Shown: one piece after another, positions 14,530 to 58,832 of the stretch
Position numbering within the stretch: position 1 is the first letter of the stretch
How the letters are laid out: each line of letters opens with the position of its first letter
IMG/VR virus record: IMGVR_UViG_3300046543_000266
Coordinates: 124,001-188,000 of that record
DNA: 64,000 nucleotides
Direction: 5' to 3' (one strand)
Translations under genes and position numbers: made by a program
Notes under the pieces: model-generated
What the model was told of the DNA's origin: nothing
Seen by the model: the letters and a program-made list of their open reading frames with translations, nothing else
Database searches by the model: none

Positions 14530-14542
14530 GGAGTGCCGGGCC

Positions 14543-14731
14543 ATGGAATTTTATAAGGTAGCGGCACGTAACGGCGGCATTCGCACCGACCTCATTCTGT
14601 ACAAGGACGACAACGGTGTGAAGTGGAATGTGCCGAGCGTACATCGGATCTGGCGTGAAATCTATCTGCCTTGGCTGGCAGCAGGTAACACGCCGAAGGA
14701 GCCAGACACGTCAGATAACGCCAGAGGTTAG
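14543..14731 (+). CDS. Small tail-fibre-associated protein
   Basis: YLPWLAAGNTP motif is typical of short ORFs that follow phage fibre genes; SD aaggag. Confidence 0.65.
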   Translation: MEFYKVAARNGGIRTDLILYKDDNGVKWNVPSVHRIWREIYLPWLAAGNTPKEPDTSDNARG

Positions 14732-14733
14732 TA

Positions 14734-15306
14734 ATGATAGAGCAACTGAACTTCCCGTACACTGCGGTGAAGGCGGACGGGCAGATGATCATCGCACAGT
14801 CCCCGTCGGTCGATGCACTACCGTCCAGCGCGACGGTAGTGGATCAGGTTGGTCACAACAACGTGGTGCTGACAGCAGACCTCAACGATAGTTATCGATT
14901 GGGGATGTACCAATACACGACGATCCGCAATCGGTGGCAGATGGTGCTCCCGTACGAGGTCATCTGTTCGGAGCTGTTCGGCATCTCCACGATGTACGTG
15001 TGTCTTCCCAACGATGGGGACAATCTGCTGCCGATAGGCGATACGGGGCAAGCACTGCTGACCGTAACGCGGAACGGCGTGTCGATCTCCAACTACGATC
15101 GCACGAACACCGGATTGGCGTTGCAGTTACCGGCAGTCCGTGGTGATGTGTACGGTATCCTGTGTGCGTCTCCGATCACCGCAGCAACCGTAATACCGGC
15201 TGGAATAGCAGACGCACCGTTTGATAGCAGTCCCTACGTCCGCACTAACGGGATGTGGGACACGCTTCAAGATCACCTCAACGAAGGCGAATTCACAGGT
15301 TCCTAA
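14734..15306 (+). CDS. Hypothetical virion protein
   Basis: Sits in the operon; ends LNEGEF, similar to the LDEGTY end of the next gene. Confidence 0.6.
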   Translation: MIEQLNFPYTAVKADGQMIIAQSPSVDALPSSATVVDQVGHNNVVLTADLNDSYRLGMYQYTTIRNRWQMVLPYEVICSELFGISTMYVCLPNDGDNLLPIGDTGQALLTVTRNGVSISNYDRTNTGLALQLPAVRGDVYGILCASPITAATVIPAGIADAPFDSSPYVRTNGMWDTLQDHLNEGEFTGS

Positions 15307-42863: not shown

Positions 42864-44417
42864 TTACTCTTCTGCGTCGTCGTCCATGGACTTCGACTTC
42901 TTCTGGTTGCGTTTCGCTACGTACAACTCTTCGCCAACGCCGGAAGCCAACTGGCGGAAGCACCACGAACGCAGATTCATAGGCTTGTAACCCATGCGGT
43001 TCGAATGCTCGGTCATCTTGGCCTTGTCGCCGAGGACCCATTCCTTGAGTTGCGCCCAGCTGATGACCTTCTTACCAGCGCCCAGACCCTTGAGGTCGAT
43101 ATACATATTTTTCCGATTCTTGCCGGTGAGCTGGCCCGTCTGGCGGAGATAGTACACCGTGTCGAAGAACGGGTCGAAACCGCGAGCTTCACCACTGCCG
43201 TCTTCTTCCCACAAGCGAACGAAGCCCATACGACCCGGCGTCCACAGCTTGTTCTTGATAGCCTTGAACCGGACGTAGCGATAACGGTCGGTGCCCTCTA
43301 CTTCTACCGACGGCTCGTGCTCGCGACGATCTTCCGCGTCGAACTTCGGATTGAACGGCAGGTTCGAGGCCAACGGCGTCCATTGGATACGCACGTCACT
43401 GTTGAAGCGCAGTGCCTGTCCACCCGGTTCTGCTTCCTTCGGACCGTACATCGCCATCGGAACAGCACGCAGCTGATTGATACCAATGACCGCGACCATC
43501 TTTGATGCCAGACGACCCTTCACGCGCGGCAGATGCTTCGAGAACATACGCGCTTGCAACGCCAGCGAGTTGTCGCCGTCTTCCTTGTCGTTCGACGTCG
43601 GGTTCATTGCCGGATACGAGTCGACCAAGATCAGAGCTTGCAGTGCTCCATCGGGTGCCGGGATCCAGATGCCCTTGCCGTACTTCTTGGACATCGTCTT
43701 GTCGGAATGGCTATCGAGCTTCGCCTTGTTTTCCTTCGTCTCGTCGAACACGAGCCACCACTTACCCGCGATGAACTTCTTGTCCGGCAGCTTCTGCAGC
43801 ATGTCGTGCAACCAGTCGAAGAACTTCTCGCCGATGGTTTCCGCACGATAACGCACACGCGGAGCCACCGTCCACTTGCCGGTTTGCGCGTCCTTCTTGC
43901 CGAACACTTCCTTGATCGAGATCTTCGCGCCGCAGGTACGCAGAATGTTGGCGACGTAGGGCTTGGAGTTCTTGGTCGAACCTTCGTAGTCCGCCAGCCC
44001 GATGATCGGGATGTTGGCGTTGATACCAGCGGCCATGATGTGCAGCGCGCCAGTAGTCTTACACGACTGTTCCGGGCCGAAGTGGGTGTACCATGCCGGG
44101 CGGATACCACCACCCTCGACGAGGTCCAGCGCCAGAATGCCGGTGGACATCGGCGGTACGTCTTCGAGCAAGTCGCTATCGAAGTCTTGACGGCGGCTGA
44201 CGTCGTCGAGCGTATCCGAGTACAGACCAGCGACGTCGAAGGTTACTTCACCCTTCGCACCCTTCTTGCCACGAGGTGCCTTACCTACGACCGCTTCGAT
44301 TGCTTCTTCGACTTCGTCTTGCTTGGCGCGGCGTGCTGGAGCTCGCTTGACTGCTGGCGCCTTCTTGGCTGCGACCTTACGGGCCGGAGCCTTAGCTACT
44401 GGCTTCTTTGTTGCCAT
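42864..44417 (-). CDS. recA: RecA/UvsX-like recombinase
   Basis: STGILALD, GPEQSCKTT (Walker A), LILVDSYPAM (Walker B), LQARMFS, INQLR, PGGQALRFNSDVRI, IKNKL. Start set at ATG 44417. Confidence 0.9.
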   Translation of the reverse strand: MATKKPVAKAPARKVAAKKAPAVKRAPARRAKQDEVEEAIEAVVGKAPRGKKGAKGEVTFDVAGLYSDTLDDVSRRQDFDSDLLEDVPPMSTGILALDLVEGGGIRPAWYTHFGPEQSCKTTGALHIMAAGINANIPIIGLADYEGSTKNSKPYVANILRTCGAKISIKEVFGKKDAQTGKWTVAPRVRYRAETIGEKFFDWLHDMLQKLPDKKFIAGKWWLVFDETKENKAKLDSHSDKTMSKKYGKGIWIPAPDGALQALILVDSYPAMNPTSNDKEDGDNSLALQARMFSKHLPRVKGRLASKMVAVIGINQLRAVPMAMYGPKEAEPGGQALRFNSDVRIQWTPLASNLPFNPKFDAEDRREHEPSVEVEGTDRYRYVRFKAIKNKLWTPGRMGFVRLWEEDGSGEARGFDPFFDTVYYLRQTGQLTGKNRKNMYIDLKGLGAGKKVISWAQLKEWVLGDKAKMTEHSNRMGYKPMNLRSWCFRQLASGVGEELYVAKRNQKKSKSMDDDAEE

Positions 44418-44443
44418 GAGTTCTGTTCCTGGGAAGGGCAAAT

Positions 44444-44483
44444 GAAAAGACCCGCCGCGAACGGTCATCTGTTCGGCGGCGGG
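44444..44483 (-). terminator. Intrinsic terminator/attenuator between ssb-like gene and recA
   Basis: CCCGCCGCCGAAC...GTTCGCGGCGGG followed by TCTTTTC on the - strand. Confidence 0.65.
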
Positions 44484-44529: not shown

Positions 44530-46068
44530 TTAGCGACGTGCCTTCTTCACCGGAGCCTTCTTACGTGCGGGCGGCTCGTCGTCCTCGTCTTCATCTTCGT
44601 CGTCGAAGTCATCGTCATCTTCATCTTCTTCCTCGACGACCTTCTTGCTTTTGGCTGCCGTCTTCTTGGCGGGAGCCTTGGCTACCGGCTTCTTGGCACC
44701 CTTCTTGGGCGGCGGGGCTTCGTCTTCATCTTCGTCGTCGAAGTCATCTTCATCTTCGTCATCCGAATCTTCGTCCTCGTCCTCGTCTTCCTCGACGGCG
44801 GCCTTCTTGCCCTTGGCTACAGGCTTCTTCGCCGGGGCTTTCTTGGCACCCTTCTTCGGAGCCGGCTCGTCGTCTTCGTCTTCGTCTTCGTCCTCGTCGT
44901 CGAGATCGTCGTCTTCGTCTTCCGAGTCTTGATCATCCTCGTCGTCCGAATCTTCGTCCTCGTCTTCATCATCGCCGAAGTCGTCCTCGTCTTCTTCGTC
45001 TTCCTCGACCTTCTTGCCCTTCTTGGCCGGTGCAGCCTTACCCTTCTTGGGCGGCGGTGCATCGTCCTCGTCTTCATCTTCGTCGTCGAAGTCATCGGAC
45101 TCTTCGTCCTCGTCTTCTTCGTCTTCCTCAGCAGCCTTCTTGCCCTTGCCCTTTGCCGGAGCAGCCTTCTTGGCGGGAGCCGGTTTGCCCTTGCCCTTCT
45201 TCGGCGCCGGTTCGTCGTCCTCGTCCTCGTCTTCCTCGTCGAGGTCTTCGTCCTCTTCGTAGTCGTCTTCAGCAGCCTTCTTGCCCTTCGACTTCACCTT
45301 GATGCCCATGCGCTTTGCCCACGATTCGTAGTCACGCTTGGTTTCTTCTTCCGTCGATTCAGCAGCCAGATCCGACAGGTCCCACGTGAGGAATGCCAGT
45401 TCTTCTTCGGTCAGCGGCGAACGCTCGCCGATCTGCACGGAGTACTGCTCAGCCGGTGCCTTCGTGCTGTCGAACATGATACGCACGTCGCAACCGAACT
45501 TATCGTGGCTGACTGCGTAGGCCGTCGTGCTGCCAGTCTTCTTCGACGTTACCGTGTTGAGGGGCTTCAGTTCAGCCAGCTTGCGGATAGCGCCGCCCGG
45601 CAGTGCCAGAGCAACCCACGGTGTCCACGTTTCCGAGTCCTTGTCCTTGTGGCCCGACTTGCGTTCGGCAGCCGTCGGCTTCGGCAGACGCGACGGTTGC
45701 TGCTTCTGGGCAGCACGCGACAGAGCGTTGCAGTAGAACTTCTTTGCCACCTGAACCGTCTTCTTGTCGTTCTCGCGGATGTCTTCCTCTTCCTGCACGA
45801 TTGCATACCACGGATCGTACTTCGTGGTGTCGAACTGCTGCGTGTCCGGATCGTACGACGGGAAAGAGACCGGGAACTTCGTGGGCTTGCCGTCCTTCGT
45901 CTTCGTCTTGACCCAACCCGTTGCGTAGCTGAACGTCGGTCCGAAGAAGCGGAACGTCACCCACTTCTTTTCCGGGAACTTGAACAGGTTGATCTTGTCG
46001 GTGATCTTCGGTTTGTCCGAACGGTTGCCAGTGCGGACGTTATCGAAATCTGTACCCTTTTGAGCCAT
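44530..46068 (-). CDS. gp32-like single-stranded DNA-binding protein with long acidic/basic low-complexity tail
   Basis: KWVTFRFFGP, KFYCNAL, FGCDVRI..D.TK.....YSV..GERSPLTEEE fit the phage SSB OB-fold pattern; adjacent to recA. Confidence 0.6.
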   Translation of the reverse strand: MAQKGTDFDNVRTGNRSDKPKITDKINLFKFPEKKWVTFRFFGPTFSYATGWVKTKTKDGKPTKFPVSFPSYDPDTQQFDTTKYDPWYAIVQEEEDIRENDKKTVQVAKKFYCNALSRAAQKQQPSRLPKPTAAERKSGHKDKDSETWTPWVALALPGGAIRKLAELKPLNTVTSKKTGSTTAYAVSHDKFGCDVRIMFDSTKAPAEQYSVQIGERSPLTEEELAFLTWDLSDLAAESTEEETKRDYESWAKRMGIKVKSKGKKAAEDDYEEDEDLDEEDEDEDDEPAPKKGKGKPAPAKKAAPAKGKGKKAAEEDEEDEDEESDDFDDEDEDEDDAPPPKKGKAAPAKKGKKVEEDEEDEDDFGDDEDEDEDSDDEDDQDSEDEDDDLDDEDEDEDEDDEPAPKKGAKKAPAKKPVAKGKKAAVEEDEDEDEDSDDEDEDDFDDEDEDEAPPPKKGAKKPVAKAPAKKTAAKSKKVVEEEDEDDDDFDDEDEDEDDEPPARKKAPVKKARR

Positions 46069-48349: not shown

Positions 48350-48823
48350 TTAATAGTCGGCTACTGCGGTGTGATAGCAAACGATGCCGCGTGCGCGCCA
48401 CATATCGACTACGCATTGACGATCGTCGAACGCCATGAACACGTCGGCCAAGTCGAAGCCCGCTTGCTGCACGATCCACGGCTTGTAGTCTTCGTCCGAC
48501 ATCTTCGCAAGACCGTGGAGGCCGGGCGGACGCATCAGCAGTTGATCGTTGGTGATCTTCGGGCCAACGTACTCGTGAATCTGGTGGAGCGTCATACCCC
48601 GATACTCAGGACCGTCGCCACGGCTGGTAACGAACAGCATGTGGAACGCCGGATTGTCGTAGAAGGCGCGGTAGACGTGTGCTCCTTGTGGGATCACCGT
48701 GTCATTGACCGTTGCCTTGATGTAGGCTTCACGATCACCCTTGAAGTAGTGGGCCGTGCGATGGCTGGAGTTGATGAGGCAGCCGTCCAGATCACAGATG
48801 ACCAGCTTGATTGGTGCTTGCAT
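48350..48823 (-). CDS. HAD phosphatase (T4 PNK 3'-phosphatase-like)
   Basis: ICDLDGCL, FVTSR, LLMRP, FDDRQCVVDMWRARG. Confidence 0.85.
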   Translation of the reverse strand: MQAPIKLVICDLDGCLINSSHRTAHYFKGDREAYIKATVNDTVIPQGAHVYRAFYDNPAFHMLFVTSRGDGPEYRGMTLHQIHEYVGPKITNDQLLMRPPGLHGLAKMSDEDYKPWIVQQAGFDLADVFMAFDDRQCVVDMWRARGIVCYHTAVADY

Positions 48824-49309: not shown

Positions 49310-49506
49310 GTTGGTTCCTTGGGTTGGAAGCGGTTCAATACTACGGCGGTTCCGTCAGCGCTAATACGTTGCCACACTAGCGCTTTCTCTTCGACGCTGA
49401 GGAATACCCAATTGTCTACTTCGAATTGGGTACGACCGCAGCCTTTGCATTTGGCGTCGAAGAGCGTGGAACACACGCCGATACATGGGGTGTCGAGTCC
49501 GTGCAT
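49306..49506 (-). CDS. DUF1289-family small Cys-rich (predicted Fe-S) protein
   Basis: TPCIGVCST...KCKGCGRTQFEVDNW...S.EEK..VWQRI; TAATG-coupled start at 49506. Confidence 0.8.
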   Translation of the reverse strand: MHGLDTPCIGVCSTLFDAKCKGCGRTQFEVDNWVFLSVEEKALVWQRISADGTAVVLNRFQPKEPT

Positions 49507-50606
49507 TACTTCATCCGGCGGCCGAGCCACATGATACCGGCGGTCAGCCAGTCGTTGCCGAGCTTGGTGTCGAGGTCAAGCTGGAGGCACTGCTTGTTGT
49601 ACGTGAGCAGAGCCAGACCGCTCGCCGTGTCGCCGGCCTTGTGCATGTTGTAAGCCCGAGCCATCGGCATTGCCACGTAGTCCAGGAACTGGTTCTCGTA
49701 GTCACGGGGGTTCACCTGCTCGGTACACACCGTGACGAAGTCGCGCAGTTCGTCTTCGAATTCATCGCTGTCAGCTTGCAGCGGCAGCGGTGCCACGTCT
49801 TCGTCATACCGACCTGGATAGGCCAGACCACCCTCGACCCCACGGAAGCCGTTGCCCGCGCGCTCGATGAACCGCTTTGTTACGTCGAACTCCGTGTAGA
49901 TGTGCAGGTTGTTGGACACCTGATAGTAGTTGCCAACTTCGACGCCGATCTTGTTCGCCAGATATTCATGGAGGAACGCGAAGTGAACGGCGTTGGCGCC
50001 GTAGGCACCCCAGATCATGTCGTTGCTACGGTTCGTCACCGTGATATTGAGCTTGCCCTGACAGATGTCGACGTAGACCGCGGTATTGCACGGCAGGTCC
50101 TTCGACGTCTGGTTCAGCAGATCCGACGGCTTATACTCGTTGTACATGCCGATGCCGCTTTCGTGCTCGACATCTTCGCCCTTGCCGTCCCACATGCTGA
50201 TCACACAGCGACGGCTGCCCGGATTCTTGCGCAGTTCGGCGATCACGGCGTCCAGCTGATCGTAGCCGAAGTGGTTGCGCCAGCGGAAGCCATACGCGCC
50301 GTTGAGCGTCTCACCGTCGTCGGTGTACTGGAGCATCTGCTTGGCATAGTAGCCGATGGTCGCCACGTCGTTGTTGCCATTCAGCATCCACATGCTTTCG
50401 ATCAGGTGGAGGAACGGGTTGGCGTCGCGAGCCTTGCTGAACGACACACGGTGCATCGGGCTCGACCACATGGTCGTCACCGGACGGGGGAAGCGCAGGA
50501 CCGGACCGTTGCGGCTGTCGGTGACAACACCGTTGGCGAGGATCTGGGGGATGCCAATGCTGAGGGCATGGTCCGGGTTAGCTGCATGAATCACAAACAT
50601 GAACAA
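49506..50606 (-). CDS. Thymidylate-synthase-fold enzyme, probable dUMP hydroxymethylase
   Basis: SRNG, GAYGFRWR, SRRCVISMWD, catalytic DLPCN, NRSNDMIWGAYGANAVHF (Asn at the dUMP-specificity position), NNLHIY. Confidence 0.8.
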   Translation of the reverse strand: MFMFVIHAANPDHALSIGIPQILANGVVTDSRNGPVLRFPRPVTTMWSSPMHRVSFSKARDANPFLHLIESMWMLNGNNDVATIGYYAKQMLQYTDDGETLNGAYGFRWRNHFGYDQLDAVIAELRKNPGSRRCVISMWDGKGEDVEHESGIGMYNEYKPSDLLNQTSKDLPCNTAVYVDICQGKLNITVTNRSNDMIWGAYGANAVHFAFLHEYLANKIGVEVGNYYQVSNNLHIYTEFDVTKRFIERAGNGFRGVEGGLAYPGRYDEDVAPLPLQADSDEFEDELRDFVTVCTEQVNPRDYENQFLDYVAMPMARAYNMHKAGDTASGLALLTYNKQCLQLDLDTKLGNDWLTAGIMWLGRRMK

Positions 50607-50671: not shown

Positions 50672-51676
50672 TTAGGAGCCTTTGTAGCCGCTGCGAGGCT
50701 CGCCTTCACCGCTGATGACGCGGCAGTATTTGTCGTACTCGCACAGACAGTTGCTGAGGTTCGCTGCGCTCAGGTCGACGAAGCCCGTCTCGAAGCTACC
50801 GGACCACCACTTCGGAGGCACGATCGTCTTCGCCAACTTGTTCATGTCGCGGCGCAGCTTGACCATCGGCTCGTTGAGAGCATTGCCGCGGACGTCGGCT
50901 TTACGACCGCCGCTCATCACTCGGTTCATACCCCGCGTAGTGCCCGGTCCAGGACTAGTGAACGTCTCGATGTCCGTGGCATTCATCAGCCACTTCTGGC
51001 TGTACGTCAGGTCGACGATAACCTGATATGCCATGAACGGTCCCCAACCTTGATACTCACGAAGGGTGGATACGGCCTCTTCCTGGGACTCCTTGAACTT
51101 ACTGCGCAATTCCTTGCGATCCTTCCACAGCGGATCCAGCCCAAAGTACGGGATGTAGTAAGCCTTGCTGTTGTCCGGCGGGTTCGTGCCCTTCGGGAAC
51201 ACGCTGTTGACGATGTAGGCACCGGTGATCAGCTTCTGCTTCTCGTTCTTGATAGCGTTGAACGTGGCGTAGGCTTTCTTGGCACTCCAGCCGTCGACTG
51301 GGAAGCTACCTTCGTCCATCATGCGTTGCAGCGTATCCGGCCAGTTGATGATACGAGCCAGCGCCAGCATGAACCACAGGTCCGGATGGTTCTGGTACGG
51401 CGTGATGATGTTGTCGATTATCCACTTGCTGACCGTGTCGAGCTCACGGTAGATGTTGCAGAAGCGGTAAGCGCGCAGCACTGGATCGTTGGTCCACGGC
51501 TTGGCCTTGCCTACGTGATAGCGCTTCAGGTAGATAGAGTGGCGCTCGATCCAGAACTTCGTGATCGACTCTACCTTGTTTTGATCTTCGGGCTGGAACA
51601 GATAGGGCAGCTTCTTCGGAGCCGCCGCTGGCTGATCAAACAGACTGCCTTGACTGGCGTTTGTTTTGCGCTTCAT
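50672..51676 (-). CDS. aGPT-Pplase1 / 5-hmdU DNA kinase helical-domain family protein
   Basis: ERHSIYLKR...PWTNDPVLRAYRFCNIYRELD, GWGPFMAYQVIVDLTY, GPGTTRG, NCLCEYDKY.R. Start moved to ATG 51676. Confidence 0.8.
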   Translation of the reverse strand: MKRKTNASQGSLFDQPAAAPKKLPYLFQPEDQNKVESITKFWIERHSIYLKRYHVGKAKPWTNDPVLRAYRFCNIYRELDTVSKWIIDNIITPYQNHPDLWFMLALARIINWPDTLQRMMDEGSFPVDGWSAKKAYATFNAIKNEKQKLITGAYIVNSVFPKGTNPPDNSKAYYIPYFGLDPLWKDRKELRSKFKESQEEAVSTLREYQGWGPFMAYQVIVDLTYSQKWLMNATDIETFTSPGPGTTRGMNRVMSGGRKADVRGNALNEPMVKLRRDMNKLAKTIVPPKWWSGSFETGFVDLSAANLSNCLCEYDKYCRVISGEGEPRSGYKGS

Positions 51677-51981
51677 TTGAATAAGCCTCGTGTTCTTTGA
51701 TTGGCAATCGTTGCCAGATACGTACCGTGACAGCGCTTGGGATTGCACCAACATCCGAGACGCTGTCCTTTTAAATCACGGCGGATCTCGTCTCGGGTTG
51801 GTGGCGTTTCTCCGTTAGGTGCTTCGAGCAATCCGTCTAGCCACTTCATGTGCTTGTCGCAGCATTCGGTACGCGTGCCGTGAACGCCGACCACAAAGGG
51901 ATTGCCGTACTTCTGAGGCCTCCCGATGTAGACGTCGTATTCGGATCGCTCGCAGTGGACAACCAACGGATGGTTCGTCAT
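51673..51981 (-). CDS. DUF4326 protein
   Basis: YDVYIGRP..YGNPF...LKGQRLGCWCNPKRCHG; start at ATG 51981. Confidence 0.85.
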   Translation of the reverse strand: MTNHPLVVHCERSEYDVYIGRPQKYGNPFVVGVHGTRTECCDKHMKWLDGLLEAPNGETPPTRDEIRRDLKGQRLGCWCNPKRCHGTYLATIANQRTRGLFK

Positions 51982-52772
51982 AGCAGGAAGTGTTCGGCTT
52001 CGATTGCACGAGTGCGCCAGTACATGCACTGGTCACCGAGCGACATGTTGCGAATGTCGTCTTCGGAATAGTACCCGAGCACCTTGCGCGCCAGCGTGTC
52101 CACGGTATGTGCGTGGGTTGTACCCCTATTTACGCTGCCGACCATTTCGTAGCCGAAGAGCTTGAAATCGCGCTCGTACAGACGGTTGATCAGGCCCAGA
52201 ACATCTTCGTCCAGTTCTTCGATTTTCAGCTTCGGACCAGTCGGATACTTCGTCTGATCCTTCGAGTGGCCGAACTCTTCGGTTTCCACGCCGATCATTT
52301 CACGCACCGTTTTCCAGTCGGCATCAAGGCGCTCGTAGCGGCCGATGAAGTCAGCGTAGCACTTGTTGCCTTGATAGAAGAAGTAATGCTGCGGGCAGAA
52401 GTGCGTGTACTTCCAGTCGAAGCGCACACTTACTTCGTTCAGATTGCGGCGCGCGAATTCGTTGAAGTCGGCATCGGCCGGCAGATTGTGTTGGCGCTTG
52501 TGCTCGGCCCACGAACTGATGAGACGAGTGTACGGATCACGCACGAAGCCGAACTTGAAGTACTCCTCGAAGTAGTGATGGGGCCACACTGCCGGGATGT
52601 CGGCAACGCACACGTGGAACACTTCGATCACACGTTCGAGCTTGGGAATGAACGACTGGTAGTCCAGCTTCAGCGGGTTGCTGTCATACTGGAAGAGGGT
52701 GCGGCGAATCGACGTTCCTGCAACCTTTGGGTTGTGCAAAAACATGAACTTGTTTTGGTCACTGATGATCAT
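51978..52772 (-). CDS. PAPS-dependent sulfotransferase (Sulfotransfer_2 family)
   Basis: 5'-PSB loop FLHNPKVAGTS, 3'-PB motif FVRDPYTRLISSW, HFCPQ, DFIGRYERL. Confidence 0.85.
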   Translation of the reverse strand: MIISDQNKFMFLHNPKVAGTSIRRTLFQYDSNPLKLDYQSFIPKLERVIEVFHVCVADIPAVWPHHYFEEYFKFGFVRDPYTRLISSWAEHKRQHNLPADADFNEFARRNLNEVSVRFDWKYTHFCPQHYFFYQGNKCYADFIGRYERLDADWKTVREMIGVETEEFGHSKDQTKYPTGPKLKIEELDEDVLGLINRLYERDFKLFGYEMVGSVNRGTTHAHTVDTLARKVLGYYSEDDIRNMSLGDQCMYWRTRAIEAEHFLL

Positions 52773-53682
52773 TGAGCAGTCTCTTGAGGTATTCGCGGTC
52801 TTTGTTTTGAAACGCCAGTTCGGCCTTCAGTAGTAATTTACCCTTCTCGCGGAACTTGGCGCGCTTTTCTTTGTCTTTGAACAGGCCCGGTGCGTTCATG
52901 AAGTCGACGCGCAGGAAGGACGCAACGTGCTGAGCTTGCTTGCCGCGCTTGATCAAACCTGGGAACATCACCATCTGGCGCAGGAACGAGTCGTGGACAT
53001 GCTGGACCTTGCGCTCGCTGCCTGCACCACCTTGATCTTTCGGGTCGAAGGTGGTGTTCCACAGCATGTGATAGTCGACGACCGAACGATAGCCGTTGCA
53101 CAGCACCGCCAGATTGTGAACTGTGTCGATGCCCCACAGATCGCGCGTTTCCTTCTTGTCGATGCAGTGCAGCAGGATGTTCACATCGTAGCCCGCGACG
53201 TTGGTACACTTGTGATTCTTGCGCTCCAGTCCCCAACGTTCGATGATGTTCTTGTGCATGAAGTAAGCGCCAGCGCCGACCAGCGCGTTACCCTTGCGGA
53301 ACAGTTGCGGAGCCCTCTTCAGGAACCACTCGTCCGCAGCGCTGATGTCTTTGGTTGCGCCCACGTACTTGTCACCACGACGACCGTAGAACAGCATGTC
53401 GTCCTCTATCACCATTGCGAACTTGGCCCCCTGCTTGCGATGATGATCGAACACCGAGTAGCGCTTGTTCGGCAGCAGGATGTCGTCCTTGGTGCGCAAG
53501 AAGTCCACGTGCTTGGCGTAGGCTTCCTTCTTGTGGGCCGCATGCTCTGAGGCCGGGCACACCACTGTGATGTGCTTCTGCACTTCAGGGGACAGGTAGG
53601 ACAGCGTCTTCTGCCGTCCTACTCGCCCCTTGGTCAGCAGGTAGATGTGGTAGTCTTTATCCATATGATACGTAGGTTCCAA
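52759..53682 (-). CDS. TAGT/JGT-like GT-A glycosyltransferase, paralog A (divergent)
   Basis: IYLLTKGR, KR..V, AMVIEDDM metal-binding motif, C-terminal QGG; the usual ED motif reads GID. Confidence 0.6.
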   Translation of the reverse strand: MEPTYHMDKDYHIYLLTKGRVGRQKTLSYLSPEVQKHITVVCPASEHAAHKKEAYAKHVDFLRTKDDILLPNKRYSVFDHHRKQGAKFAMVIEDDMLFYGRRGDKYVGATKDISAADEWFLKRAPQLFRKGNALVGAGAYFMHKNIIERWGLERKNHKCTNVAGYDVNILLHCIDKKETRDLWGIDTVHNLAVLCNGYRSVVDYHMLWNTTFDPKDQGGAGSERKVQHVHDSFLRQMVMFPGLIKRGKQAQHVASFLRVDFMNAPGLFKDKEKRAKFREKGKLLLKAELAFQNKDREYLKRLLNDHQ

Positions 53683-54175
53683 CCCACCCTTTATGGTGTT
53701 CTTTTATACCGCCGCAGACGGCCTTCATGCAAGAGTAGTCTAGACCGTGAATGCGGCATAGACCCCTGAGATTGTTTCCAATGTAGCTCACCCAACGTGG
53801 AGAAGTCACGTGGTAGCCGCGCGCCAGCTTGTTGCCAATCTCCACATCACCGCCGTTGAGGGCGCGCTCCGACAAGTTCTGAGCGGTTGTGATGAACCGG
53901 CAGTTACCCCAGACGTAATCACCGACGTCACCGAGGCGACCCATCTGGAATTCGGATACTGCCTTTCCGATCTGATCGGGGTGTTTTATACCGGCACGTT
54001 TCGCGAGCTTCATGTACTGGCGGAAGGTCAGCAAACAGACGCAACCACGACGACTAGCATTTCCGCGTAGATCGCGCCATTTCCTTCGCCATTGAAACCA
54101 GTAGCTCTGATCGAAGCTGAGCTTCTGCAGCACACCACAAGCTTCCTCTTCAGTTAGAACACGATCCCGAGTCAT
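53657..54175 (-). CDS. HNH-like (beta-beta-alpha-Me) free-standing endonuclease
   Basis: NASRRG...LLTF, MGRLGDVGDYVWGNCRFITTAQN; C-terminal NUMOD-like HHKGW. Confidence 0.55.
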   Translation of the reverse strand: MTRDRVLTEEEACGVLQKLSFDQSYWFQWRRKWRDLRGNASRRGCVCLLTFRQYMKLAKRAGIKHPDQIGKAVSEFQMGRLGDVGDYVWGNCRFITTAQNLSERALNGGDVEIGNKLARGYHVTSPRWVSYIGNNLRGLCRIHGLDYSCMKAVCGGIKEHHKGWVGTYVSYG

Positions 54176-54942
54176 TAGACCAGCCCTCCGATTTTAGCAG
54201 CACCCCTCCAACTGATGCGAGTGTTGGAATCCGGGTGTTGGGCCGATGGCGGCTTTTCCTTCACGACATCGGGGTGCAGCTTGAGCAGCTTCTGCAGCGC
54301 AGCCTTCGCCATATCACGGGTACGTTCACCTTCTAGCCCACCTGGAGCGTCGGCCTTACGCTGCGCCACCGCCATGTCGTACGTGAGGGCGATTCGCGTT
54401 CCACCCTTGAGTAGTTGGAGCGTGTAGTCTATGTCCTCGTACGGAAATAAACGATCCCACACGATCTTCTTTACGGTGCCGCGGGACATGCCGAAGGCGA
54501 ATCCTAGATGGCTGTTCTCTTTGATACCACCCTTCGGCGCGAAAGCCTTGGTCCCGAGCCCGACGCACTTGTAGCGCGAGCACAGGTCCGGAAGCACCTT
54601 GGTCCAGAAGCCCTTGGTCACTTCGGGAACCGTCGACGCCACGACGTGCTTGTCCTGCTCCTTATCGAAGGCATACAGGTACAGATCGTCGTCGAACATG
54701 AACGCGTACTTGTGCGGGCTGTTCTCCATGATCCACTGGCGCTTGGCACTCAGCGTCTGGATGGACTTCGGCTGCGCCAGCACGTTGACCTTCGGGTAGT
54801 TGGCCTTGAGGATAACGACTTCATCCTTGGGGCATACCAGAGTGACGTGACCGTGCATTCCCTTAGGCAACCGCTCGACCGTCAGCTGGTTGGCAGTACG
54901 GCCCCGCGTTGGGATGTAGATATGATAGTTGATCTTGGACAT
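54175..54942 (-). CDS. TAGT/JGT-like GT-A glycosyltransferase, paralog B
   Basis: IYIPTRGR, LSAKRQWI, FMFDDDL, YEDIDYTLQLL..G, PGG. Confidence 0.75.
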   Translation of the reverse strand: MSKINYHIYIPTRGRTANQLTVERLPKGMHGHVTLVCPKDEVVILKANYPKVNVLAQPKSIQTLSAKRQWIMENSPHKYAFMFDDDLYLYAFDKEQDKHVVASTVPEVTKGFWTKVLPDLCSRYKCVGLGTKAFAPKGGIKENSHLGFAFGMSRGTVKKIVWDRLFPYEDIDYTLQLLKGGTRIALTYDMAVAQRKADAPGGLEGERTRDMAKAALQKLLKLHPDVVKEKPPSAQHPDSNTRISWRGAAKIGGLV

Positions 54943-55676
54943 CAGAAGCGAGCCTCGTTTCTGCGTTGGAATTCCGCCAGATGCTCAGGCGTACCCAGAT
55001 TGGTGAACTGACGGGTCTCGAAGTACCGCAGCGGCAGTCGTGTGATCCCGTTGATGACGGCGCTCAGTGGCAGTTCGGCATAAGGCTTTCTGTTGCGCTC
55101 GGCTTCAAGGAACGCATCCGCCATGTCGTCCACGTTACGGAACCAGTAGCAGCCAGTGTTGATGTAGTCGGAGATCCGCAGCTTCTCGGACAGACCATGG
55201 AACACGGCAGTCTTACGCCACGCCGAATGATACTTGGCTGGATTGTTCAGGAAAGAGTACTCTTCCGACCCGCTCTTGTCTTCGTAGGCAATGACGCCGG
55301 AGCTGCCCTCGATGACTGCTTCGGTCATGGTGTACTTGAGGTCGACGTGTGCCGAGCAGTCACAGTCGAAGATGATGACCGGTCCTTCACGCGGTGGATC
55401 GCACATCAACGCCAGAGCCATCGCGCTGAATGCCGGACCCGGCGAAACGTCTTCGAGATAGTGGACGGCCTTGAAGGTATCCCCGTACTGTGCGAGCAGC
55501 TCCTCGTCCTTGCGCAGGATCAGGATCTCGACGTCCGACGGTTCCAGCCCATACGAGTCGATAACCCATCGGTACATCGGGACGCCCGGAAGTACTTCGA
55601 TGAACGGCTTGCTGACCGGGAATCCCTGCTCCCGGAAGCGTGAGCCCATTCCGGCGGCGGACATTAGATAGCGCAT
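54942..55676 (-). CDS. Sugar-phosphate nucleotidyltransferase (NTP_transferase fold)
   Basis: SAAGMGSRF...GFPVSKPFIEV, IFDCD, SEKLRISDYINTGCYWF, LGTPE. Confidence 0.8.
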   Translation of the reverse strand: MRYLMSAAGMGSRFREQGFPVSKPFIEVLPGVPMYRWVIDSYGLEPSDVEILILRKDEELLAQYGDTFKAVHYLEDVSPGPAFSAMALALMCDPPREGPVIIFDCDCSAHVDLKYTMTEAVIEGSSGVIAYEDKSGSEEYSFLNNPAKYHSAWRKTAVFHGLSEKLRISDYINTGCYWFRNVDDMADAFLEAERNRKPYAELPLSAVINGITRLPLRYFETRQFTNLGTPEHLAEFQRRNEARF

Positions 55677-57202
55677 GATTGCTGTTCCATGAGTTGGTAT
55701 ATTTCTTGGCCCTTCTTGAACAGAGCCAGTTGTCGTTGCAGCGAATCGCTGTGTAGCGGCAGCATTGAGAAGAACAGCAGCGCAGTCATCGCCAGCACTT
55801 CTTGGAAGTCGATACCGAAGCGCTCCCGAACTACGACGCTGAAGTAACTAATGACCTCACGGTTCAGCGGAGGCGGGTTGATTGCCGAGACACTGTAGTG
55901 CCCGGCGATAATCGAGTCGTAGCCAACCATCGAGTGCAGCAGCTTTGCCAACTCGTAGCGGACGTCGCCGTATATGGAGCGCTCGTCGAATCCGTTGAGG
56001 CCGCGCGGGTCAAACACCTTGATGCTATTAGTGCGATGGTCATACGCGATGTTGCTGAAGCACAGGTCACCATGAACTACCGAGATACGGTCAGGGCGAT
56101 CGGGTATCTGTGCGATGCAGTGCTCGGACAATGCCGTAAGCTCAGGCACAATCTCCGAGAAGGTGTCGGACTGGCCGCTGGACTGACCACTGAGTTGTAG
56201 CTGCTGGATGCGCTGGCGAGTCTTACCTTCGATGAGCTCACGGAACGCCGCCGCTTCATGCAGGACGGTCTCTGAGTCGATATGGTGTCCCGGGTCACCA
56301 CCAATGAAGTCGAGGCACTTGTCGATGATGGTGTGCCACACACCAAACTCTTGATTGCCGAACACGTACAGTTCAGCCAGCGTCGGCAGCGGCAGGTACT
56401 CGATCTCGTAGGATCCGTAGCAGTCGTACGACAGCAGGGCCGGAGTGTACTTACGCAGCTTGACTGGGAGGTTGCTGTACCAATCGAACTCAGCGTGGAT
56501 CTTGGCTGGAGTACCACTCTTACTCACCACGTTGTCTTCGATGCGAAGTTGGTTGAAATGCCGCGACGTCAGGAAGTTCTGCTTGGACAGGAAGTAGGTA
56601 GCAGCGTGTCCGAAGTCAAACCAGTCGACGCCGTCCGTATAGTCCTGATAGGTTACGGCGACTTCGTCGTGAATCCAATCCAGGGCTTCACTGATATCGT
56701 CGTCAGGTGCTATCACACGCGCTACCGTGTTGAGCGGAGCCATGAAGTATCCGATGAACACAGCATTGCGGCCGTTATCCAAGCGTATATCCAACCAGTT
56801 GAAGTTACCCGGACGGGTCGCAGCCACCCCGATGCACGGAGTGGTCGCCCACTTGCTGATCAGTGTATCGCCCCACAGAACGTGTAGTTCCACACCCTCA
56901 CAGTTTCGAGCACCGTTCAAGTGGTTCACTATCCTGGTCACCGCATAGTACAGAACGTGCGACAACGGACGTGGGTGCTTGGACGAGTACTCACTTAACA
57001 TGGTCACGCGATCATCGCACGGCGGCATCGGGAAATCTTCCGGATGTGTGACAAATACCTTGTCGAAGTCTGCACCCATCTTCAGCTGATGTTGGATCAA
57101 CGACTTGCCAGCTACCGGAATGCGTGAGGCGGGCAGCTTACCGAACATGAACTGAAGCTCGGGGTTGCACAGCGCTGAAGACAGGATAAGCAGGACCTTC
57201 AT
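55664..57202 (-). CDS. Nucleotidyltransferase-like / APH-choline-kinase-like phosphotransferase fusion (sugar kinase candidate)
   Basis: FGKLP..RIPVAGK, WFDFGH..TY, VVHGDLCFSNI, FDPRG, GDVRYELAKL.HS. Same architecture as so-called capsular biosynthesis proteins. Start at ATG 57202. Confidence 0.75.
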   Translation of the reverse strand: MKVLLILSSALCNPELQFMFGKLPASRIPVAGKSLIQHQLKMGADFDKVFVTHPEDFPMPPCDDRVTMLSEYSSKHPRPLSHVLYYAVTRIVNHLNGARNCEGVELHVLWGDTLISKWATTPCIGVAATRPGNFNWLDIRLDNGRNAVFIGYFMAPLNTVARVIAPDDDISEALDWIHDEVAVTYQDYTDGVDWFDFGHAATYFLSKQNFLTSRHFNQLRIEDNVVSKSGTPAKIHAEFDWYSNLPVKLRKYTPALLSYDCYGSYEIEYLPLPTLAELYVFGNQEFGVWHTIIDKCLDFIGGDPGHHIDSETVLHEAAAFRELIEGKTRQRIQQLQLSGQSSGQSDTFSEIVPELTALSEHCIAQIPDRPDRISVVHGDLCFSNIAYDHRTNSIKVFDPRGLNGFDERSIYGDVRYELAKLLHSMVGYDSIIAGHYSVSAINPPPLNREVISYFSVVVRERFGIDFQEVLAMTALLFFSMLPLHSDSLQRQLALFKKGQEIYQLMEQQSCAI

Positions 57203-57237
57203 TATGACCTCGGATTGTTGTGGGCGTACTACCCTAT

Positions 57238-58116
57238 TTACTTCTGGCTGGCAGCATAGCATTTCTGCCAGTAGATGATGACTTCCTTGCGGGAGATGCT
57301 CTCTTTGTACTTACGGTCCACCACCTTGACGAACGGCTCGTGCGCACGCGCCAGCTTGACCGCAGCGATGTCCGAGCGCTTGATCGTCCGCTCTTCGAAT
57401 GCCCCACCCTTTGCCCCGTAGGACAGCGGGTTGACTACGAAGTTGTTCATGATTAGATTGGGGATGCCGCGCTTGAGCAGATGCAAGGTCACGTTGAAGT
57501 CTTCGCGGAACTTGATCTCGTCGAAGCGGATGTCGTTGTCGAGTAGCGTGCGGCGGTGATGACCCATCGCGTGCATGGCGCGACCGGCTTCCATGGTTTC
57601 CTTGCGCTGCCGATTGTTGTTCTGCCGTGAAGCAATGCAGGTATGCCGATACTCACGTTCGAGCATGGCATCACGGATGAAGTCGAAGCGGCGGATCTTC
57701 TGCTCGTCGGTGAAGCCGTCCTTGAACAGGAACAGCACACCCTTCTTCTTGTACTCAGGCAGCACATCCCACTGCACCTTCTTGGGGTCGAAGGCTCGAT
57801 ACTTCTTGTTGCAGCGCCGGAAGAAGTACATGTCGTCGTCCATCTGGAAGATGTTGTCCGACTTGACGTTCTCGATGATCCACTGGCGCTTCTTGGCGAT
57901 GCCGTCCACCGTCGGATCGTCGATAGCGTACACCAGATCGTGTTTATACTTCTTCTTTAAGGCCCGCGCATCTTCGAGGGTCGAAGTAATGAGCAGTACC
58001 TTGGCACGCAGTTCTTCGGGGATGCCCAAGAACGTCACTTGGCGATCCACCCGTTGATGCGTTGGTATGACCAGCTGAAAGTCTTTATCAGCCACGAGGA
58101 GTCTGTTCTTGAACAT
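57238..58116 (-). CDS. TAGT/JGT-like GT-A glycosyltransferase, paralog C
   Basis: VIPTHQR, GIAKKRQWI, FQMDDDM, FREDFNVTLHLL..G, KGG. Confidence 0.75.
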   Translation of the reverse strand: MFKNRLLVADKDFQLVIPTHQRVDRQVTFLGIPEELRAKVLLITSTLEDARALKKKYKHDLVYAIDDPTVDGIAKKRQWIIENVKSDNIFQMDDDMYFFRRCNKKYRAFDPKKVQWDVLPEYKKKGVLFLFKDGFTDEQKIRRFDFIRDAMLEREYRHTCIASRQNNNRQRKETMEAGRAMHAMGHHRRTLLDNDIRFDEIKFREDFNVTLHLLKRGIPNLIMNNFVVNPLSYGAKGGAFEERTIKRSDIAAVKLARAHEPFVKVVDRKYKESISRKEVIIYWQKCYAASQK

Positions 58117-58127
58117 GCCCGAGCCTG

Positions 58128-58832
58128 TTAGTAGGTGAGAACGAACTTGCGGAATCCGTCAGGTGTGTTCTCGATGGAAGGGTAGCCAGTGGCCTCGACG
58201 TTGTACTTGGTGACGCCGTGCTCGACCGTGGTGGCGGGAACCATCAGACCACGCAGTTCGAAGTCGTCGAACAGATACTCTTCCATCGTGGCTGCGTTGA
58301 TAACGCGCCACTGATTGGTGTGGCCGTCCGAATGCGTGTTGTACCGGATGTAGTACTTCTTGTGACCGGTCGTCACCACCTTGGCGATCTGACGTGCTTC
58401 CTTGTCGAACTCTTCGGCGCTCTCCAGATAGTTGCCGATCTGATAGTCCACCTCATCGTACTTGGGCGGCACGTACATCTTGTTCGTGTCCTCGAAGCGG
58501 CCCTTGTCGATGGTGTTCATCCACACCTTGAACACGTCGTCTGTGTGATCGAGGAACTGTTCTTGGAACGCGTTGCGCGTGGTTGCCAGCGGACACACGA
58601 AGTCGACGATAACCCAATGGCCTTGGAAGTGCAGCATCCGAGCCAACTGACCGAGAGTGGTTGCTTGCTTGACGCGGTCCAGGTTGGAGAAGCCCAGATG
58701 CGACGTGATGGTGCTACGCGCCCAGTCAGCGTTGACGTGGATGGCGTTCAGCTTCTGTTGGAGAACCTTTGCCAACGTGGTCTTGCCGCTGCCGGGCAAA
58801 CCCTGAATGAAGATGACTTTGTTTTGGCTCAT
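58128..58832 (-). CDS. Adenylylsulfate (APS) kinase-like P-loop kinase
   Basis: QGLPGSGKTTLA, NAD.AR, LGFS..DR..Q, VIVDFVCP...R, GRFEDTN; C-terminal extension of unknown fold. Confidence 0.7.
   Translation of the reverse strand: MSQNKVIFIQGLPGSGKTTLAKVLQQKLNAIHVNADWARSTITSHLGFSNLDRVKQATTLGQLARMLHFQGHWVIVDFVCPLATTRNAFQEQFLDHTDDVFKVWMNTIDKGRFEDTNKMYVPPKYDEVDYQIGNYLESAEEFDKEARQIAKVVTTGHKKYYIRYNTHSDGHTNQWRVINAATMEEYLFDDFELRGLMVPATTVEHGVTKYNVEATGYPSIENTPDGFRKFVLTY

Follow-up and report, generated by a model that had tools for sequence, protein, structure and literature searches.

RESULTS

A ten-gene block with three glycosyltransferases. The window, a 64,000-nucleotide stretch from the 217.6-kb genome of a jumbo phage related to Ralstonia phage phiRSL1 (IMG/VR record IMGVR_UViG_3300046543_000266), contains a tightly packed, co-directional block of ten genes on the minus strand. 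Three of them, within 52759-58116, encode glycosyltransferases of the TAGT family (PF20691): A (open reading frame 52759-53682), B (54175-54942), and C (57238-58116). All exceed the Pfam gathering score of 27.5 bits, with scores of 40.9, 130.8, and 44.4 bits (E-values of 2.7e-10, 8.4e-38, and 2.4e-11), and all match phrog_842, "beta-glucosyl-HMC-alpha-glucosyltransferase" (E-values of 2.6e-41, 1.3e-46, and 6.3e-48). A whole-genome profile scan finds exactly these three TAGT matches, which are only 24 to 29% identical to each other. Thus, the initial annotation was correct in its observation of three divergent glycosyltransferases at this position. However, A most likely starts at ATG 53664 (301 amino acids), as in all its orthologues, rather than at TTG 53682, and the interval also holds three other genes (an HNH-like open reading frame, a nucleotidyltransferase, and a nucleotidyltransferase-kinase fusion).

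The block begins, in coordinate order, with a thymidylate synthase (TS)-family gene (49506-50606), probably a dUMP hydroxymethylase that makes 5-hmdUMP, although hydroxymethylase rather than methylase activity is inferred. The protein is divergent from canonical ThyA (PF00303, 77 bits, E = 1.3e-21; phrog_5131, E = 1.7e-111). It is 55% identical to phiRSL1 ORF230, annotated as deoxyuridylate hydroxymethyltransferase in AB366653, and 42% identical over its full length to the M6/YuA/PaMx11 enzymes. It is the only TS-family gene in the genome, and no ThyX was found. The adjacent gene (50672-51754) encodes an HMUDK_hel protein (PF18723, E = 3.8e-48; formerly aGPT-Pplase clade 1) that is 38 to 40% identical to proteins annotated as aGPT-Pplase clade 1 in M6-like phages. 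Its true start may lie further in, as orthologues are 323 to 344 amino acids long. It has no P-loop, and a hmU-DNA-binding accessory function is only one possibility. The partner P-loop kinase family, PF18748, is absent from this genome, from phiRSL1, and from a 249-kb relative (G003).

The next gene (51978-52772), whose start overlaps the 3' end of gene A by 14 nucleotides, encodes a carbohydrate-type sulfotransferase predicted to depend on PAPS (Sulfotransfer_2, PF03567, 85.9 bits against a cutoff of 22, E = 6.2e-24; phrog_3347, E = 2.8e-47). Both PAPS-binding motifs are invariant in seven orthologues: HxPKxxG(T/S), with H13, P15, K16, and G19, and RxPxxRxxS, with R78, P80, R83, and S86. Between A (52759-53664) and B lies an HNH-endonuclease-like open reading frame of 172 amino acids (53657-54175; phrog_2081, E = 1.5e-7), probably a mobile element rather than part of the pathway. 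It is absent from phiRSL1 and from the metagenomic locus L006, but follows the B-type gene in loci L005 (68% identity) and L021 (64% identity, higher than the 50% of the neighboring glycosyltransferase).

Between B and C are two genes that may supply activated sugars. The first (54942-55676; 244 amino acids) encodes a protein with a predicted sugar-phosphate nucleotidyltransferase fold. It has no Pfam hit but matches phrog_3980 (E = 1.2e-16) and, by structure in the ESM Atlas, NTP_transferase clusters at TM 0.80 to 0.84. Orthologues are present in phiRSL1, L005, L006, L011, and L017. The second (55664-57262; probable start at Met21, position 57202) is a fusion of an N-terminal nucleotidyltransferase and a C-terminal APH-type kinase, predicted to turn a free sugar into an NDP-sugar. 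It matches phrog_24015 (E = 3.2e-96), has weak APH and fructosamine-kinase hits, and resembles bacterial NTP_transferase+APH "capsular biosynthesis/WeoK" clusters in the ESM Atlas at TM 0.86 to 0.89.

The block ends, beyond C, with an APS-kinase-like P-loop kinase (58128-58832; 234 amino acids), predicted to make PAPS for the sulfotransferase. It scores 56.6 bits against PF01583 (cutoff of 21.1; E = 3.9e-15), and 20 of its 21 PDB matches, including the best 19, are APS kinases (best 2yvu, E = 3.8e-11), with the DWAR and GF(S/T)xx(D/E)R stretches preserved in the alignments shown. However, its TIGR00455 score of 52 bits lies far below the equivalog cutoff of 138.7. It resembles the M6 gp54-type hmU DNA kinase only at the P-loop.

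Family motifs and predicted structures. The motifs listed in the initial annotation are real and correspond to the conserved columns of the family: xIPTxGR (LLTKGR in A), KR, DDD (EDD in A), the "ED" motif (YEDID in B, REDFN in C, and WGIDT in A), and GG...R. In an alignment of 83 TAGTs, the invariant columns (A numbering) are D88, D180, and G213, and the nearly invariant ones are R14, Q18, E40, R68, D87, D89, and R218. All three proteins carry every invariant column, and of the seven nearly invariant positions only D87 differs, as a conservative Glu in A. In B, the most consensus-like paralogue, which matches the full-length profile, the corresponding conserved residues include D84-D85-D86, E169-D170, G202, and R207. 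Only the Asp of the "ED" motif is invariant, and A keeps it (D180); the preceding Glu varies widely across the family (C, T, H, S, G, D, I, and L). The proposed altered catalytic motif in A is therefore a change at a nonconserved position, not the loss of a conserved acidic residue.

AlphaFold2 models of A and B (both with pLDDT of 95.8) have a predicted GT-A fold, and their PDB matches are all GT-A enzymes (Z scores of 12 to 14). Model A has an extra C-terminal helical pair (residues 265 to 298). Among predicted viral structures (BFVD), model A groups with phage TAGTs at TM 0.6 to 0.84, including 0.72/0.84 to the phiRSL1 B orthologue and 0.65/0.70 to a Klebsiella-phage beta-glucosyl-HMC-alpha-glucosyltransferase. 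Grouping of the models with LPS or protein glycosyltransferases had been named as evidence against a DNA-modifying role; as no TAGT or JGT structure is solved, every PDB hit is a generic GT-A enzyme (TM 0.4 to 0.55, Z about 14). Among the 30 best Swiss-Prot AlphaFold matches of model A, the GREB1 glycosyltransferase domain ranks second (E = 9.3e-7) and JGT did not appear, in a structural comparison that included no direct alignment to a JGT sequence.

Recurrence of the module. The same nine gene families (TS, HMUDK_hel, sulfotransferase, three TAGTs, nucleotidyltransferase, nucleotidyltransferase-kinase, and APS-kinase-like) occur in the same order in phiRSL1 and in different orders in L005, L006, and L011, loci of distant metagenomic phages. 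L007, L017, L020, and L021 carry subsets that always include TS, HMUDK_hel, an A-type TAGT, the sulfotransferase, and the APS-kinase-like gene. Counting across the loci, a TS-family gene lies in the same block here and in nine others. The APS-kinase-like gene usually lies next to TS and near HMUDK_hel. L011 additionally encodes a CysD-like protein (PF01507, E = 1e-28) and a CysN-like GTPase beside the module.

The three paralogues come from three deep clades rather than from recent duplication. A-type TAGTs form one clade (SH-aLRT of 98), and orthologues of A are 58 to 77% identical with the predicted donor-site residues invariant. In 12 of 12 loci with an A-type gene a sulfotransferase gene is present, directly adjacent in 10 and one or two genes away in the other 2. 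In contrast, three loci with only non-A TAGTs (L022 to L024) have no sulfotransferase and no APS-kinase-like gene, although many comparison contigs are short and these absences are weak evidence. All three still carry hmU front-end genes (TS in L022, HMUDK_hel in L024, and both in L023). C groups with phiRSL1 ORF237 and the L011 and L007 genes (SH-aLRT of 99), whereas B is 78% identical to phiRSL1 ORF234. A C-like TAGT is the only non-A glycosyltransferase in L007 and L020, and a TAGT of the sister group is the only glycosyltransferase in L023.

DISCUSSION

Comparison with known systems. The family that includes A, B, and C also holds the T2/T6 enzyme, which acts postreplicatively and adds a second glucose to glucosyl-hmC in phage DNA (PMC13216743, PMC13390438), providing a precedent for a sugar acceptor. 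The T-even enzyme works after a GT-B alpha-glucosyltransferase, whereas here the base is inferred to be hmU, no GT-B enzyme is present, three TAGT clades are combined, and sulfation genes are attached. The kinetoplastid base-J glucosyltransferase JGT and animal GREB1 are reportedly TAGT relatives (Iyer et al. 2013). In kinetoplastids, hmU is made on DNA by JBP dioxygenases and receives a single glucose; in the system proposed here, hmU would come from a nucleotide-level TS homologue, and the predicted product is larger and sulfated.

The front end is shared with the thymidine hypermodification pathway of M6, PaMx11, and ViI (Lee et al., PMC8989533), where TS-type and HMUDK_hel genes lie in the same neighborhood; identities to the proteins of AN14 (M6 virus) are 42% and 38%, respectively. 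However, the P-loop hmU DNA kinase, the amino-acid:DNA transferase, and the PLP and radical-SAM enzymes of that pathway are absent here, and glycosyltransferases, NDP-sugar enzymes, and sulfation genes take their place. A tblastn search of the whole genome found nothing with the AN14 gp54-like kinase and no hit at an E-value of 0.01 or better with the gp51-like protein (clade 2/3 aGPT-Pplase). Phage 5mC-TET-glycosyltransferase clusters also use several glycosyltransferases to build mono- to trisaccharides on a hydroxymethyl pyrimidine (Pyle et al., 10.1101/2023.12.21.572611), but they act on cytosine, modified by a methyltransferase plus a dioxygenase, and neither "sulf" nor "TAGT" occurs in that text. 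SP-15, Carin-5, and YerA41 carry anionic glycans on a thymine-derived base and have a gene block of nucleotidyltransferases and glycosyltransferases (PMC12686479, PMC5977210). Those bases use a dihydroxypentyl linker and phosphate, the glycosyltransferases are of other families, and no sulfotransferase or APS kinase is reported.

Alternative interpretations. We consider it possible, but less likely than sequential action, that each TAGT glycosylates hmU directly with a different sugar, anomer, or sequence context, as T4 alpha-GT and beta-GT share hmC (PMC13216743). The DNA would then carry a mixture of monosaccharide bases, one of them sulfated. The deep separation of the three clades and the two nucleotidyltransferases, which possibly make two NDP-sugars, are compatible with this. 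However, the characterized phage member of the family acts on a sugar acceptor, and A-type TAGTs were never seen alone: wherever the contig extends beyond the A-sulfotransferase pair another TAGT is present, whereas a non-A TAGT occurs alone in L023. This pattern fits a dependent second step better than independent enzymes, but the evidence is weak either way. It is also conceivable, though unlikely, that the APS-kinase-like protein is the missing P-loop partner of HMUDK_hel and phosphorylates hmU in DNA, with sugars attached through, or in exchange for, the phosphate, comparable to the phosphate-bearing oligosaccharide thymidines (PMC12686479), and with the sulfotransferase using host PAPS or another 3'-phospho-nucleotide donor. 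Three complete genomes with the module have HMUDK_hel without a PF18748 kinase, the gene is positioned much as gp54 is in M6-type phages, and its apsK equivalog score is low. On the other hand, its solved relatives are almost exclusively APS kinases, the APS-site stretches are kept, only the P-loop is shared with a gp54-type kinase, and L011 adds CysD- and CysN-like genes. Furthermore, L023 has HMUDK_hel, TS, and a TAGT without this kinase or a sulfotransferase, so the kinase tracks the sulfotransferase rather than HMUDK_hel.

We regard as improbable a module that does not modify DNA but builds or alters a sulfated cell-surface or virion glycan, for example to change host LPS or capsule and exclude other phages, as proposed for glycosyltransferase clusters of jumbo cyanophages (PMC7824862). 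The fusion protein does resemble capsule and O-antigen enzymes, carbohydrate sulfotransferases normally act on glycans, and surface-polysaccharide clusters are known in jumbo phages. Yet characterized members of PF20691 act on DNA bases or on sugars attached to DNA, the genes travel with TS and HMUDK_hel through repeated reshuffling in at least eight lineages, and no flippase, polymerase, undecaprenyl-phosphate transferase, or signal peptide was seen in the block. Least likely is the suggestion of the initial annotation that A is an adaptor, in this view a noncatalytic protein that only recruits the sulfotransferase to glycosylated DNA. The WGIDT and EDD variants, the extra helical pair, and the constant proximity to the sulfotransferase could be read in this way. 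However, every invariant family column is intact in A and in all 12 A-clade sequences aligned, only the DxD-adjacent D87 is conservatively Glu, the position before the invariant Asp varies across active-looking TAGTs (one A-clade member has Glu there), and the invariance of the predicted donor-site residues points to selection on catalysis.

A putative pathway for sulfated glycans on phage DNA. We infer, with moderate confidence, that the three proteins are catalytically competent GT-A glycosyltransferases from three anciently separated clades of the TAGT family and that they act in one functional module. Gene content, conservation, and linkage are what the analysis demonstrates; all of the chemistry, including sugar transfer itself, the sugar donors, and whether sugars are added in sequence or in parallel, is inferred. 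The interpretation offered in the initial annotation is partly supported: TAGT-family membership, hmU rather than hmC as the more likely base, a plausible multisugar product, and a special, sulfotransferase-linked status of A are upheld, whereas an altered catalytic motif or adaptor role is not supported.

In the proposed pathway, the TS homologue makes 5-hmdUMP, which is polymerized in place of dTMP. The choice of hmU rests on the similarity of the TS and HMUDK_hel proteins to those of M6- and PaMx11-type phages, whose 5-hmdU-derived bases are experimentally established (PMC8989533). As the amino-acid transferase, PLP enzyme, and P-loop hmU kinase are absent, the hydroxyl would be free for glycosylation. 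The TS homologue could nevertheless be an ordinary thymidylate synthase, as it is the only TS-family gene and there is no ThyX. HMUDK_hel has no explained role in a glycosylation route and accompanies a kinase in known systems. The fusion protein and the second nucleotidyltransferase would make one or two NDP-sugars, and a canonical TAGT (C is the better candidate, then B) would place the first sugar on the hydroxymethyl group of hmU in DNA, as in base J. The remaining TAGTs would extend or branch the glycan, with A installing, or acting on, the sugar that the neighboring Sulfotransfer_2 enzyme O-sulfates with PAPS from the APS-kinase-like enzyme. The order of action and the identity of the sugars rest only on which genes co-occur. 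The APS-kinase-like protein, as the only P-loop kinase in the module, might instead phosphorylate hmU or another NDP compound. We found no paper describing such a system and no experiment on the DNA of this phage or of phiRSL1.

If this reading is correct, the phage would replace thymine with 5-hmU and decorate it with a sulfated sugar chain, a chemistry not yet described for DNA. The result would be a bulky anionic glycan on thymine positions, the presumed purpose of which is to block host nucleases.

A ten-gene block with three predicted DNA glycosyltransferases

The IMG/VR virus record of which bases 124001-188000 were examined is complete, with a length of 217,605 bp and direct terminal repeats. 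Its only named relative among 50,697 GenBank phage records is the jumbo Ralstonia phage phiRSL1, at about 73% nucleotide identity over part of the region. From 58832 down to 49506, the minus strand carries ten abutting or overlapping genes. These encode an APS-kinase-like P-loop protein of 234 aa (58128-58832), the TAGT-family glycosyltransferase C (57238-58116), a 532-aa fusion of a nucleotidyltransferase and an APH kinase (55664-57262, probably starting at Met21), a 244-aa nucleotidyltransferase-fold protein (54942-55676), TAGT B (54175-54942), an HNH-like ORF (53657-54175), TAGT A (52759-53664), a Sulfotransfer_2 enzyme (51978-52772), an HMUDK_hel protein (50672-51754), and a thymidylate synthase (TS) homologue (49506-50606). 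ORF230-238 of phiRSL1 are the same genes in the same order, without the HNH-like ORF. A promoter and terminator scan of 47.5-60.5 kb predicted fewer sites than in shuffled sequence and gave nothing usable.

The HNH-endonuclease-like ORF (172 aa, minus strand) sits directly after the B-type TAGT in three loci: here, in metagenomic contig L005 (9429-9947), and in contig L021 (7998-8558). Its identity across these loci is 64-68%, higher than that of the neighboring glycosyltransferase in L021 (50%), and it is absent from phiRSL1 and from contig L006. It looks like a homing-type mobile gene with a preferred insertion site at the B/A junction.

Two further features lie downstream of the block. A small HAD phosphatase of the PNKP type (48350-48823, minus strand; E 7e-12) is encoded two genes downstream of the TS homologue, and one occurs again near the module in contig L011 (15122-15574). 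We speculate that it could be a dTMP or nucleotide phosphatase that helps to exclude thymine, as in other hmU phages. The strong AT-skew dip at 44 to 46 kb comes from a 512-aa protein (44530-46068, minus strand) in the position of the annotated ssDNA-binding protein of phiRSL1. Its C-terminal 270 residues or so are a low-complexity run of Asp/Glu blocks alternating with PAPKKGKG-like lysine-rich repeats, and a RecA/UvsX-like gene (42864-44468) lies beside it.

Conserved motifs and predicted structures of the glycosyltransferases

The initial annotation described three divergent glycosyltransferases in this region, and that observation holds. All three pass the curated Pfam threshold for TAGT (PF20691), match phrog_842 at E 1e-41 to 1e-48, and are the only TAGT matches in the genome. 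They are 24-29% identical to one another, while their phiRSL1 orthologues are 64-78% identical. The motifs listed in that annotation are the conserved columns of the family.

Its interpretation is only partly supported, as the claim that paralogue A has an altered catalytic motif did not stand up to comparison with the wider family. We searched 1.84 billion representative proteins with a profile of A and its five orthologues and then aligned 83 TAGTs. The invariant columns are the middle Asp of the DxD motif (D88 in A), the Asp of the "ED" motif (D180 in A, D170 in B), and a Gly (G213), whereas R14, Q18, E40, R68, D87, D89, and R218 are nearly invariant. A carries the family residue at all of these positions except D87, where its EDD has a conservative Glu. 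The residue before the invariant Asp, which is Glu in B and C and Ile in A, is Cys, Thr, His, Ser, Gly, Asp, Leu, or Gln elsewhere, and one member of the clade of A has Glu there. Thus, A differs by a two-residue insertion and a substitution at a variable position and not by loss of the conserved acidic residue, and we reject the idea that A is inactive. By analogy with GT-A mechanisms in general, we infer that D180 may be the catalytic base of an inverting enzyme.

AlphaFold models of A and B, for which two alignment rows from a GenBank-annotated locus were left out, are confident (pLDDT, 95.8; pTM, 0.92) and have a predicted GT-A fold. A has an extra C-terminal helical pair at residues 265-298. 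Grouping of the models with lipopolysaccharide or protein glycosyltransferases had been named in advance as an outcome that would count against a role on DNA. However, as no TAGT or JGT structure is solved, the PDB matches form a flat list of generic GT-A enzymes, including PcManGT, LH3, COLGALT1, TarP, RmlT, GalNAc-Ts, and B4GALNT1, with Foldseek TM-scores of 0.4-0.55 and VIA Z-scores of about 12 to 14. This comparison cannot separate DNA glycosyltransferases from those acting on LPS or proteins, and we set it aside as uninformative. Predicted structures are more informative. Among predicted viral structures, model A matches phiRSL1 ORF233 (TM 0.99), the B orthologue ORF234 (0.72/0.84), several TAGT-domain proteins, and a Klebsiella phage beta-glucosyl-HMC-alpha-glucosyltransferase (0.65/0.70). 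Among Swiss-Prot AlphaFold models, the GREB1 glycosyltransferase domain ranks second. Sequence searches of B, the nucleotidyltransferase-kinase fusion, and the 244-aa nucleotidyltransferase against the PDB gave no useful hits, nor did NCBIfam scans of the glycosyltransferases, nucleotidyltransferases, and sulfotransferase.

Conservation of the module and its link to a sulfotransferase

Orthologues of A are rare, with six clusters among 5.8 billion proteins. A scan of IMG/VR with the single protein A found nothing, and an alignment-based scan found only three loci, including phiRSL1 itself. Contigs carrying these orthologues or more distant A-like proteins show the same gene families rearranged. 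In L005 the order is B, HNH, A, sulfotransferase (ST), a third TAGT, nucleotidyltransferase-kinase, nucleotidyltransferase, HMUDK_hel, APS-kinase-like, and TS. In L006 it is a third TAGT, B, A, nucleotidyltransferase-kinase, nucleotidyltransferase, ST, HMUDK_hel, kinase, and TS. In L011 it is C, nucleotidyltransferase-kinase, nucleotidyltransferase, B, ST, a long A-type glycosyltransferase, HMUDK_hel, kinase, and TS, followed just downstream (13737-15129) by a CysD-like PAPS_reduct protein (E 1e-28) and a 183-aa EF-Tu-type GTPase (CysN-like), which suggests that this metagenomic relative also makes its own APS. Contigs L007, L017, and L020 have only two TAGTs, an A-type plus a C-like or third-clade one, and L007 also has an epimerase. 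In contig L010 (1141-4948), the A-type TAGT is flanked by two sulfotransferase homologues and preceded by a UDP-galactopyranose mutase (GLF), hinting at a galactofuranose-containing, possibly doubly sulfated variant. The persistence of the same families through repeated reshuffling, in lineages whose proteins are only 25-60% identical, is strong evidence for one pathway.

In a maximum-likelihood tree of 97 TAGTs, the A-like proteins form one clade (SH-aLRT, 98), B falls in a second (96), and C falls in a third (99). The third glycosyltransferase of L005, L006, and L017 falls in yet another clade. Every one of the 12 loci with an A-type gene has a Sulfotransfer_2 gene, which is directly adjacent in 10 and one or two genes away in L007 and L006. 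In the phage studied here, the two genes overlap by 14 nt. In contrast, three loci chosen from other TAGT clades (L022 to L024) have no ST and no APS-kinase-like gene, although these control contigs are short, so the negative side of the comparison is weak. Of these, L023 is a neat minimal system, with one C-related TAGT, a HAD enzyme, a nucleotidyltransferase, HMUDK_hel, TS, an HD hydrolase, and a dCMP deaminase. A predicted complex of A with the sulfotransferase scored 0.00, which counts neither for nor against binding.

Predicted sulfation chemistry, modified base, and sugar donors

The sulfotransferase keeps both PAPS-binding motifs in all seven orthologues aligned. For the 234-aa kinase, 20 of 21 solved-structure matches, including the best 19, are APS kinases (E down to 3.8e-11), and the DWAR and GFS..DR stretches are conserved, although the protein scores well below the NCBI equivalog cut-off for this function. 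We considered whether it might instead be the hmU DNA kinase of the M6 gp54 type, which belongs to PF18748, and rejected this as the leading reading. The two proteins share only the P-loop, L011 adds CysD-like and CysN-like genes, and the short contig L023 has HMUDK_hel and TS but no APS-kinase-like gene. The PF18748 family is absent from this genome, from phiRSL1, and from a complete 249-kb relative. We therefore favor PAPS synthesis, but retain as a rival explanation that this kinase phosphorylates hmU together with HMUDK_hel. Homologues with 31-36% identity, annotated as "kinase" or "adenylylsulfate kinase," occur in Sano/Salvo-type siphophages (records hit were Xylella phages Salvo, Sano, and Bacata and Xanthomonas and Stenotrophomonas relatives), where they lie next to a COG3236/GTP-cyclohydrolase-II-like gene and have no sulfotransferase hit. 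This family of phage kinases may therefore have more than one substrate.

The TS homologue is divergent from canonical ThyA (77 bits on PF00303) and is 42% identical over its full length to the enzymes of M6, YuA, and PaMx11 phages. HMUDK_hel is 38-40% identical to the "aGPT-Pplase clade 1" proteins of those phages, which make 5-hmdU-derived thymidine hypermodifications through a P-loop kinase and an amino-acid:DNA transferase (PMC8989533). Only the TS and HMUDK_hel genes of that pathway have homologues here. The genome has a dCMP deaminase but no second TS and no ThyX. The hmU assignment is therefore a good inference and not a demonstration.

The 532-aa protein matches bacterial NTP_transferase+APH "capsular biosynthesis" proteins at TM 0.86-0.89, and the 244-aa protein matches sugar-phosphate nucleotidyltransferases at TM 0.80-0.84. 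We infer that these could form a salvage-type route from as-yet-unidentified sugars to sugar-1-phosphate and then to NDP-sugar.

Proposed pathway and implications

We propose that 5-hmdUMP is made and incorporated into DNA, and that a canonical TAGT then glycosylates the hydroxymethyl group. C is favored for this step because C-like enzymes are the sole non-A glycosyltransferase in L007 and L020, and a sister enzyme is the sole glycosyltransferase in L023. B and A would extend or branch the glycan, and A would supply, or recognize, the residue that the sulfotransferase sulfates with phage-made PAPS. The T2/T6 enzyme provides the precedent that a TAGT can take a DNA-bound sugar as acceptor (PMC13216743, PMC13390438). 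The analysis establishes family membership, intact motifs, predicted folds, and gene linkage with its conservation, whereas every chemical step, the order of action, and the DNA target are inferred.

In its boldest form, which the evidence leaves possible but which we hold only tentatively, phiRSL1-like jumbo phages and several unrelated metagenomic phage lineages that pair an A-type TAGT with a sulfotransferase and an APS-kinase-like gene replace thymine by 5-hmU bearing an O-sulfated oligosaccharide. This would be the first sulfated natural DNA modification, made by a dedicated TAGT clade that works hand in hand with a DNA-glycan sulfotransferase and a phage-encoded PAPS supply. The genes themselves are new members of known families, and the GenBank record of phiRSL1 already calls its neighbors "sulfotransferase-like," "APS kinase," and "deoxyuridylate hydroxymethyltransferase." Glycosylated hmC, hydroxy-C, and hmU (base J) are known, as are amino-acid-derived thymidines, but we found no described sulfated DNA base and no paper on phiRSL1 DNA modification or on sulfated DNA glycans. 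In the literature consulted, including a 2021 jumbo phage survey in which "sulf" and "TAGT" do not occur, we found neither the combination of these genes into a predicted DNA modification pathway, nor recognition of a sulfotransferase-linked TAGT clade, nor the prediction of a sulfated DNA glycan.

This work provides a sequence signature for the sulfotransferase-linked clade, W-x-(I/L/Q/E)-D-T-x-x-N-L plus a C-terminal helical pair; a minimal gene set, comprising TS, HMUDK_hel, one canonical TAGT, an A-type TAGT, ST, and the APS-kinase-like gene; and a cultured model, phiRSL1. It also shows that HMUDK_hel (formerly aGPT-Pplase clade 1) travels with TAGTs inferred to glycosylate hmU in the absence of any PF18748 hmU kinase in three complete genomes (this phage, phiRSL1, and the 249-kb relative). 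The protein also accompanies TAGT and TS in ST-free loci (L023 and L024). Its function in a glycosylation context is unexplained, and its occurrence there reopens the question of what it does. If the proposed product exists, a sulfated glycan would add strong negative charge and bulk in the major groove, which bears on resistance to restriction enzymes, CRISPR, and glycosylases, on DNA packaging in a jumbo capsid, and on sequencing and library preparation failures.
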